Source of the DNA: Parasitella parasitica NRRL 2501
Lineage: Eukaryota; Fungi; Mucoromycota
Length of the DNA: 64,000 nucleotides
NCBI GenBank assembly: GCA_025201805.1
Contig: MU619329.1
Location: forward strand, 42,154-106,153
Direction of reading: 5' to 3'
Position 1 is the first letter of the stretch. Every line of letters begins with the position of its first letter. The position numbers and the translations under genes are program-made. The notes below the pieces were generated by a model that was not told the origin of the DNA, did no database searches, and saw only the letters and a program-made list of their open reading frames with translations. This document shows, piece after piece, positions 1,974 through 39,402 of the stretch.

Positions 1974-3335
1974 ATGCCCTGTCCTGCATGTAATAGTGAC
2001 AACATAGACTCTGATGAAGGTGTAACTGTATGCGCATCCTGTGGAACTGTGATTGATGACTCTGTTTTTCAAGATAATGATTTCAGCTATACTCAAACAA
2101 ATTCAGAATATCTCCAACCGAAAACCAAAACTCGGACTGGAAAGGTAAATGTAGTTAGACAATATGTTGTCCATGAGTTTTACGCTAACCACTATTGACC
2201 GGTACAGCATAAAAGCGCTCTAGCGAATGTTGAAAAAATAGCTACATATTTCAGAATACCTGAAGACTCGATTGCTCAAGCTAAACATTTAATCCTGAAG
2301 CACAGTGAAGATCTCTCAAATCGAAATCCTTTGGAGACAGCATTGTTCGTCACTTATTTAACTGCTAGAGACCGGATATCACCTTGGTCTATTGAAGATT
2401 TTATAGAAAACTTTCCTATTCCAGTCAATAAATCAATAGTCCGGCATATCAATTTCACTTTTGCCAAAAAATCCAGCTTGTACAAGTCTATCCAGTTTGA
2501 ATCCTCTCAGAACGAACCAGATATATTTTTGGAAACTATCATGCCTGGCATCAAAAAGCAGTATGGTGGATCACATAAAATGCCCAAGTCAACGACAATA
2601 CAGCTAAAGCAACGAACAAAAGCGTTGATCAACTTGGGCGACTTGTATGGATTAAATACTGGCCGAAAAGCTAGGCCAACAATCATCGCCACAGCTATGA
2701 TCGCCTATGCTTCACTTCAAATACAAAGCAAATCTAGTAACTCCAATACAAAATCATCCAAAAAACTTAGTCTATACCAAAATCGTCGACTTGATTGCTT
2801 TAAAAAGTATTGCACTTTTAGCAATAAGATTATACAAAGTAGAATGTATGACTATATGGATTTCCTTCATGCTTGTGCTATTAATATTTCATGGATACCT
2901 AATCCTGATAAAAAGTTTATACATTACTTTTTGCAGGATATTCTCGATATGTATAGCCAGCAGAATGGCGCAGCTCCACATTTGAAGCTGACAGACGAGC
3001 AATACACTATCACCGTAATAAAGAAAAATGCTGCCTTGTCCAGCCAATTCGAAATCTTGATTAATTCTGCCCAACGACACATTGACAATAACAGTGCACC
3101 CAGCGACTACCGATCACTAGAATATAGCATTTTTTACTTGATGACATTTGGATTGACAAGAAGCGATATAATGCAGTGGTCAGAACGATCAATACGAGGC
3201 ATGGCTGATTCTCTGCAATTCAGATCAAAGTATGGAACAAACGCAAGCCTTGAATTAGACCTGGATAGAGAAGAATTGGACGACAAAGACATGTTGGATC
3301 AAGAAGTGGATGTTTATATACAGTCAATAGAGTAG
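1974..3335 (+). CDS. TFIIB-related factor, BRF2-like, 432 aa (intron 2145-2207)
   Basis: N-terminal Zn ribbon CPAC...CASCG; cyclin-fold segment RTKALINLGDLYGLNTGRKARPTIIATAMIAYASLQ; acidic C-terminal [11 protein letters not shown]. Confidence 0.75.
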
Positions 3336-3391: not shown

Positions 3392-3700
3392 CTGATCTAT
3401 CAGAATGAGAAATTATTCAAATAAAACGGTCGTGAATTAATCAGGTAAAGATCTCGTTTATTACATGAAAAAATGATGGTTTATATACTAGTGAAGCTAA
3501 GTGGACTGATGGGAGGATAAGATACAAGTGTGAGACATGGTGTGATTTAGAGAGTGGAACGGTACATTGTATCTATCGTCCATGTACATGTCATGTTGAG
3601 TTATAAATAAGGAACATGATCCATTGGGATATGTTCCTGAATTGTGTTCAGGATTGAATCTACTTGAGTTTGACTTCCGGTTGGGAAATTGACACATCAG
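3392..3700. repeat. Dispersed repeat family A, copy 1
   Basis: Aligns by eye, same orientation, with 39107-39402; shared core ggaacatgatccattgggatatgttcc. Confidence 0.85.
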
Positions 3701-3999: not shown

Positions 4000-4423
4000 T
4001 GTTATACGTCTTTACTGCGCACATTACAGTACATGTAGTCTATATGATCTGCCATAATTATAGACAGGAGATCATGGCAATGTACTTCAATTGAAGATTG
4101 AAGATTGTCCAATGATGTGATGTGATACGCTTGTGTAAATTGGCGAATAAAGTCTCTGTTTCAAATCAAGAAGGTTATTCCTGTAAGTAACACAGATCTG
4201 AGCACCAGGATAAAGGTTAAGGCTCTGTCAGATCAAAGACATGTAGCCCTTGCTGTATAACCTCATATCGTACCCTGTCAAGTAGATTGTCACTGTGAAT
4301 TAATCTTGTCAATTAGTAATCTAAATAAGTCACCATAAATTTATGTAGTTGTAAAAAGTATAAATAGCAGATGCAATTTCGATCTTAAATAAAGTATCTT
4401 TAAGTTTTCGTATCTCGTTAACA
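4000..4423 (+). mobile_element. Possible degenerate or solo LTR
   Basis: Begins TGTTA, ends TAACA, has internal TATAAATAG then AATAAAG, and is followed by tt-TGG (PBS-like). No target-site duplication. Confidence 0.3.
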
Positions 4424-39106: not shown

Positions 39107-39402
39107 TTGATTTATCGAGATGAGAAATCATTCAAATAAAATAATTGTGAATAAATCAGGTAAAAATCTCATTTATCACATGGAAAATATGATGGTTTAT
39201 ATCATAAGTGAAGTTAACTGATGAGGAGATGCGATGTAGTTAGTGTGAAAAATGGTGTGATTTAGAGAAGATGACGACAATGATTGTATACCTATTATTC
39301 ATGAACATGTCCTGTTGACATAAACATGGAACATGATCCATTGGGATATGTTCCTGGATTGTGTTCAGGATTGAGTTATTTGAGTTTGGTAAATTGACAT
39401 CA
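39107..39402. repeat. Dispersed repeat family A, copy 2
   Basis: Matches 3392-3700. Confidence 0.85.

Follow-up and report, generated by a model that had tools for sequence, protein, structure and literature searches.

In plants, a USE combined with a TATA box serves both polymerases, the choice between them being made by spacing, and SRP RNA genes also use upstream promoters. In vertebrates, a TATA box switches a PSE promoter to Pol III (PMC6004067). The TFIIB-family factor BRF2 (TFIIIB50) has been called vertebrate-only (Gouge 2015), and a later study recovered both BRF2 and SNAPc from vertebrates and from plants, describing them as "mostly absent in fungi," with a fungal sample of seven ascomycetes (Girbig 2020). 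Fungal U6 promoters have been described by their TATA, A, and B blocks (PMC5855946). In our literature search, whose reach excluded most subscription papers, nothing on BRF2 or SNAPc in Mucorales turned up; automatic Pfam tags already mark some Mucor orthologs as BRF2-like.

We analyzed a stretch of 64,000 nt (the window) from the Mucorales fungus Parasitella parasitica NRRL 2501 (contig MU619329.1, positions 42,154 to 106,153; GCA_025201805.1). It contains a gene (window positions 1974 to 3335, plus strand, as are all features of this gene given below) that we are confident is a Mucorales ortholog of BRF2, kept beside BRF1. The initial annotation described a two-exon gene coding for 432 aa with a TFIIB zinc ribbon, and this gene model is correct. 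Exon 1 (1974 to 2144; 57 codons, aa 1 to 57) covers the zinc ribbon and the B-reader/linker region and is identical to the N terminus of the NCBI protein P0001 (BD408DRAFT_446155, a hypothetical protein of P. parasitica); exon 2 (2208 to 3335; 375 codons plus the stop, aa 58 to 432) completes an exact match to that protein. The exons were searched separately, and P0001 served for the full-length comparisons. The two are separated by a 63-nt GT-AG intron (2145 to 2207; GTAAAT...GCTAAC branch site...CAG). That the gene is transcribed and spliced was confirmed by one contig of the RNA-like run X1 (library type not on record), which omits precisely this intron. Mucor circinelloides and Benjaminiella each have an intron at the corresponding position.

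A divergent intergenic region of 197 bp (1777 to 1973) separates the BRF2 gene from KIN17/Rts2, which starts with an ATG at 1776 on the minus strand and runs toward the start of the window. Four CT..AC introns of KIN17 (227 to 280, 328 to 387, 1197 to 1260, and 1664 to 1725) are spliced in run X1, in the same contig as the BRF2 intron. This head-to-head order is kept in M. circinelloides and absent in Benjaminiella and Umbelopsis; a partial 18S rRNA fragment (L099:14681-15032) lies near the ortholog on the M. circinelloides contig. Right after the BRF2 stop codon comes a dispersed repeat (3393 to 3700) with a 79% copy at window positions 39108 to 39388 and a 94% copy in locus L092; in run X1 it appears in numerous variant contigs and loose ends. 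The window also holds a AAAAGTATAAATAGC-like 15-mer (4346 to 4360), of which several hundred occur genome-wide (386 at one mismatch versus 45 for the control). These often lie in clusters close to contig ends and probably belong to a repeated element.

The TFIIB-type zinc ribbon (C3/C6/C20/C23; 1980 to 2042) is recognized by PF08271 at an E value of 4.3e-8. An N-terminal cyclin repeat (about aa 59 to 145; 2211 to 2471) was placed by the AlphaFold model and by structural alignment to BRF2/TFIIB. The C-terminal repeat (about aa 147 to 282; 2475 to 2882) is matched by the BRF2-like model PF21886 at an E value of 0.0028 (18.2 bits, below the cut-off of 27), and the relatives P0030 and P0052 reach 27.0 and 27.3 bits; the Rrn7 cyclin domain PF20644 has no match in this protein, the sole Rrn7/TAF1B-type match being that of the short zinc-finger model to exon 1. 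In the C-terminal repeat, LNTGRKARP occupies the place of the BRF1 motif GRRP(A/S)G. The reported lack of a Brf1-type GRRPSG motif and of a long C terminus holds: GRKARP stands instead of the motif, the PF07741 region that forms the BRF1 tail is absent, and the C terminus is short and of BRF2 type. The blocks that the initial annotation had compared with human BRF2 were found at aa 193 to 228, 268, 284 to 303, and 418 to 428, and they align to the human blocks given there.

In human BRF2, the W282 helix packs on wing 1 of SNAPC4 and is followed by the arch (PMC11696126, PMC4671959). Alignments place the equivalent of this helix and arch at aa 283 to 306 (2883 to 2954), with W286 aligned to human W282, and few parts of the family are conserved as well as the SNAPC4-contact Trp and the arch. 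The block that follows the second cyclin repeat, W-I/L ... L-x-D-I-L (LQDIL), is common to the fungal and BRF2-like rows and absent from both BRF1 rows and from the TFIIB rows. Near the C terminus, an acidic TBP anchor (aa 407 to 427; 3255 to 3317) aligns D421/E423/Y427 to human D386/E388/Y392, of which D386 and E388 bind TBP (PMC6004067); E423 is invariant in 28 homologs, and the anchor segment alone scores weakly. The position of the molecular pin reads YTIT (3003 to 3014), with neither LPPC nor a Cys: the redox LPPC pin with C361 is absent from Parasitella BRF2, and no Cys occurs after aa 280. Several other Mucorales and Umbelopsis have PP[A/S/T][F/Y] at this position. Because an echinoderm BRF2, which has a PP motif, also lacks the pin Cys, the redox Cys pin looks like a vertebrate sub-feature. 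Between the pin and the anchor lies a helical module (aa 326 to 399; 3012 to 3233) modeled with a block pLDDT of >90 and conserved in family alignments.

A large representative search was used to collect relatives because a word search got no further than Mucor-level relatives and the Pfam match fell below its cut-off. Together, the word and HMMER searches recovered orthologs from Mucor, Cokeromyces, Benjaminiella, Choanephora, Mycotypha, Pilobolus, Backusella, Radiomyces, Apophysomyces, Zychaea, Phascolomyces, Phycomyces, Halteromyces, Absidia, and Umbelopsis. Lower in the ranking came BRF2-like proteins, one of them an Amphiura protein that bears the name TFIIIB 50 kDa; BRF2-like proteins were met in Acrasis and an echinoderm. 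The family diverges fast, with 23 to 33% identity within Mucorales. Single-sequence PDB searches gave no BRF2 match and a 7-sequence profile reached BRF2 only at an E value of 0.32, so that a 28-sequence family profile was needed. That profile matched human BRF2 at 77.6 bits (E value of 9.3e-21), compared with 47 bits (2e-11) for yeast Brf1 and 18 bits for TFIIB. By hhalign, the family scored 206 against BRF2-like proteins and 75 against BRF1, the former value being biased upward because the BRF2-like set was itself collected with the fungal profile.

The fold points the same way. In the structure search proposed in the initial annotation, all eight Foldseek matches with E<0.001 to the AlphaFold model (pLDDT of 84.7) were BRF2. 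The top seven rows of VIA were also BRF2, with Z scores of 15.4 to 17.1 versus 14.5 for Brf1, and the BRF2 match extended furthest, to model residue 360. The top clusters in the ESM Atlas were BRF2 (0.92 to 0.93). A Basidiomycota cluster of 589 aa there (69 members, 25% with PF00382) scored 0.90 and may represent a divergent Dikarya BRF2 or Rrn7.

The phylogeny proposed in the initial annotation gave a less firm answer. In the cyclin-core tree, Mucorales and BRF2-like rows grouped together, apart from BRF1, with support of 84/87, and the full-length tree left the backbone unresolved. AU tests on a small tree with two BRF1 rows and long branches rejected neither a Mucorales+BRF1 grouping (P = 0.068) nor a Mucorales+TFIIB grouping (P = 0.21). 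The tree favors the BRF2 grouping without proving it. The two unrejected groupings would suit a Mucoromycota-specific, fast-evolving paralog of BRF1 or TFIIB that resembles BRF2 by chance or convergence, as would the BRF1-like PP(A/S)F motif of some relatives and the failure of single-sequence PDB searches to return BRF2. We consider such a paralog very improbable, given the 30-bit profile margin for BRF2, its first rank by structure, the arch block in common with BRF2 and absent from BRF1 and TFIIB, and the short, BRF2-type C terminus. In addition, some relatives reach the PF21886 cut-off, and the PP motif also occurs in echinoderm BRF2.

The suggestion that this fungus may retain a separate BRF2-TFIIIB pathway is supported by the other genes of the genome. 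The protein is not its only Brf: a canonical BRF1 with GRRPAG and a long tail is encoded by a separate gene on contig C12 (G000:C12). There are also two TFIIB paralogs (G000:C12:109286 and C205:22607), an Rrn7 on C8 that is the only genome match to PF20644, and a BDP1-type SANT domain. A search with the RPC5 C-terminal domain (RPC5_C) gave no match and was uninformative.

SNAPc subunits are encoded as well; SNAPC3 is present, and SNAPC1 and SNAPC4 probably are, to judge from their sequences. SNAPC3 is intact on C42 (157.8 bits; match to human SNAPC3 at an E value of 4.7e-28). A second SNAPC3 copy (G000:C189:6283-6857; L002, L003) is broken by a frame change and a stop and sits in a duplicated segment with the same upstream neighbor. 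The SNAPC1 candidate on C120 comprises three collinear exons with GT-AG introns that cover positions 12 to 133 of PF09808; it scores 31.6 bits in frame against a cut-off of 23.8 and was missed at the default threshold because the introns split it. The SNAPC4 candidate on C169 is a four-repeat Myb gene whose best match is human SNAPC4 (135.9 bits versus 120 for c-Myb, a margin of 16 bits), the match taking in the stretch EHPTINKKPWS. Its third and fourth repeats are c-Myb-like, and its upstream exon gave no SNAPC4 match in a PDB search, only spurious ones. In pairwise alignments, the residues that read bases in the human proteins are not kept: in SNAPC4, Y389 is replaced by H and R445 by N, and W350 of SNAPC3 has no W aligned to it. 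A Myb protein with about ten tandem repeats is also encoded, in one 695-aa frame (G000:C170:17632-19287; L055, L062).

If this set of factors operates as in humans, the U6 gene would be expected to have an upstream PSE and TATA box rather than A and B boxes, the arrangement anticipated in the initial annotation. The U6 gene (G000:C31:28222-28341; L010), numbered from a predicted start (+1) at the G that opens the 5' hairpin, is preceded by CCACAACTTGCGAAG at -62 and, 17 nt downstream of it, by the TATA box TATATAAG at about -30. No A or B box was found in the gene or in the 300 nt downstream. In its extended 3' region, U6 has an additional hairpin-like stretch ahead of the T10 terminator; the same is seen in a basidiomycete-like U6 in L083. 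U6 and both SRP RNA genes of this one genome have in common a PSE-like 15-mer, CCACAACTTG(C/T)NAAG, at -62, followed 17 nt downstream by a TATA box. Like the human U6 PSE (PMC9652321), the fungal element has CC at -62/-61 and G at -53, with AC versus human GT at -60/-59.

The SRP RNA genes came to light through the promoter. The first search pattern was composed of the U6 site and the human PSE, and it had three exact matches in the genome: one at U6, one 63 nt ahead of an Rfam SRP RNA match (SRP-1), and one (L014) without an RNA match. At one mismatch, the 15-mer matched 36 times versus 43 for the control; alone, it is therefore not enriched genome-wide, and its placement is what counts. With the element and TATA box at fixed spacing and three mismatches, 5 matches were obtained versus 0 for the reversed control, one of them being SRP-2 at the same distance. 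Thus, SRP-1 was found blind from a motif guessed on U6, and SRP-2 blind from the motif plus TATA. The upstream flanks of the two SRP genes have diverged except around the element and the TATA box. Among 200,000 random pairs, 29 gave a match of 14/15 at an identical offset. At its start, SRP-1 has an A-box-like match, which we discounted because it has no counterpart in SRP-2. Two relaxed element+TATA matches, L092 and L093, were discarded with no Rfam match. At L093 (G000:C62:116953-116991, minus strand), the element and TATA box are followed by 153 nt and a T5 run, probably by chance and possibly marking an unknown Pol III RNA. The SRP RNA genes, on G000:C150 and C166 (L016, L094), are roughly 295 nt long, and the model that fits them best is the metazoan SRP model (123.5 and 127.1 bits). 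When a metagenome was scanned for U6 of the fungal type, a single GC-rich, basidiomycete-like locus came up, with neither the element nor a TATA box, and the three Mucorales/Umbelopsis loci checked contained no U6 or SRP genes.

We consider it likely that a BRF2-SNAPc pathway drives U6 and SRP RNA through the -62 element and the TATA box. By analogy with human biochemistry, a three-subunit SNAPc (SNAPC1/3/4) would bind CCACAACTTG(C/T)NAAG at -62, and TBP would occupy the TATA box 17 nt downstream. The BRF2 cyclin repeats would clamp the TBP-DNA complex while the acidic C-terminal anchor holds TBP, and the W286 helix and arch would touch SNAPC4, thereby bridging SNAPc and TBP. BRF2 and BDP1 would then recruit Pol III through the zinc ribbon, with transcription starting at the G 62 nt after the element. 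The same analogy would put BRF2 rather than BRF1 on the U6 and SRP promoters, BRF1 serving the genes with internal A/B-box promoters.

One alternative accepts a true BRF2 ortholog that has been uncoupled in Mucorales from SNAPc or from the U6 and SRP genes. The element would then be read by another factor, such as a Myb protein, or SNAPc would work with BRF1-TFIIIB as in Drosophila and nematodes, flies and worms running SNAPc without BRF2. Such uncoupling would fit the fast divergence of the family, the altered PSE-reading residues of SNAPC4 and SNAPC3, and the c-Myb-like third and fourth repeats of the SNAPC4 candidate. It is harder to reconcile with the conservation of the SNAPC4-contact Trp and arch and with an element that sits at the human position and agrees with the human U6 PSE in CC at -62/-61 and G at -53. 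We judge it unlikely.

The coupled BRF2-SNAPc pathway also has to be set against the other small RNA genes. Of the type-3 targets named in the initial annotation, U6 carries the element and tRNA-Sec was not found in the genome. The target set differs from that of vertebrates in that SRP RNA carries the element and U6atac, RNase P, and MRP do not. Scores of an element matrix built from three sites were at background at U6atac, RNase P, and MRP, and likewise at U1 and U2 (P = 0.40 to 0.95). U6atac (G000:C22:165495-165632; L044; 64.5 bits) ends in T12 and lacks a PSE-like element, a TATA box at -30, and any A or B box; its presence indicates that the minor spliceosome is retained. The RNase MRP RNA gene (G000:C11:226439-226756; L046) has an internal T8 run, which makes transcription by Pol II likely and argues against Pol III. 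U6atac and RNase P are type-3 genes in humans, and their lack of the element counts against the BRF2-SNAPc pathway.

The seven Pol II snRNA genes (two each for U1, U2, and U5, and one for U4) have a strong TATA box, AAAAGTATAAA(A/T)(A/G)GG, at about -46 to -31. No element match was seen upstream of the U1 and U2 genes, which were read directly; U4 and U5 were assessed by motif coordinates. Because these genes carry a TATA box without a PSE-like element, SNAPc may serve Pol III only. The element+TATA combination would then drive U6 and SRP RNA alone, with U1, U2, U4, and U5 on SNAPc-independent TATA promoters; we put this forward tentatively, finding it slightly easier to doubt than to believe. 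A reading that disputes only this restriction, and otherwise overlaps the main explanation, can point to U1b and U2b, which share TCACAAAC at -61 and -65 (chance of about 0.07), and to the three sites from which the matrix was built. Set against matrix scores that do not rise above background at U1 and U2 or at U6atac, MRP, and RNase P, and against the strong TATA box of all seven Pol II snRNA genes, which in vertebrates would turn a PSE promoter over to Pol III, it appears rather unlikely. Six further exact copies of the snRNA-type TATA 15-mer are without an assigned gene (G000:C91:31161, C48:85320, C128:77892, C157:37589, C186:26296, and C358:931) and are candidates for other Pol II small RNAs (U3, U11, U12, and U4atac).

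The label "animal-style" given to the system in the initial annotation is too narrow. Since plants have BRF2 and SNAPc and BRF2-like proteins occur in Acrasis and an echinoderm, what is retained would be an ancestral system and not a specifically animal one; because BRF2 and SNAPc are ancient, that an early-branching fungus should have kept them is, in retrospect, plausible. The data suggest that yeasts lost an old upstream-promoter route for U6 and SRP RNAs that early-branching fungi still use. New here are BRF2 and SNAPc in a fungal lineage, the U6/SRP promoter element, a BRF2 with no redox pin, and a different promoter rule. If the pathway is as proposed, BRF2, three probable SNAPc subunits, and a -62/-30 promoter would place the loss later, within fungi. 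Mucorales would show BRF2 without a redox pin or tRNA-Sec, and a compact gene-external Pol III promoter would be defined for a fungal order. The choice of polymerase at SNAPc promoters would become testable by genetics in a microbe (Mucor). A Pol III-only SNAPc, if confirmed, would amount to a promoter rule without a described counterpart in vertebrates, flies, or plants and would represent an extant intermediate stage toward the loss of SNAPc and BRF2 in yeasts.

Among known systems, human BRF2 with SNAPc (PDB 4ROC, 5N9G, 8ITY, and 9FSR) has the same order of zinc ribbon, two cyclin repeats, arch, and TBP anchor. It is of similar size (419 aa versus 432 in Parasitella), has the SNAPC4-contact Trp and the TBP-binding D/E residues, and coexists with BRF1, and the Parasitella U6 gene resembles the human one in its PSE-like element at -62 and TATA box at about -30. 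The two BRF2 proteins differ in that they are about 15% identical and that the Parasitella protein has an extra conserved helical module before the anchor and no LPPC/C361 redox pin. The human type 3 set also differs, as U6atac, RNase P, and MRP are without the element in Parasitella and no tRNA-Sec was found. Where vertebrate Pol II snRNA genes have a PSE without TATA, those of Parasitella have TATA and no PSE-like element. Yeast Brf1-TFIIIB/TFIIIC at SNR6 is similar in its TFIIB-family fold and in the TATA box at U6, and the Parasitella TBP anchor resembles Brf1 homology region II. However, A and B blocks are required at yeast U6, and BRF2 and SNAPc are missing from yeast (PMC5855946), whereas neither box is detectable in Parasitella U6. 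Drosophila and Caenorhabditis elegans have the SNAPc core of SNAPC1/3/4 but no BRF2, unlike Parasitella. Plant BRF2 (Arabidopsis O81787) is likewise a non-animal BRF2 accompanied by SNAPC1/3/4 (bioRxiv 10.1101/2020.06.29.177642, Supplementary Table 1); in contrast to the plant USE and TATA, the Parasitella element is seen only at Pol III genes.
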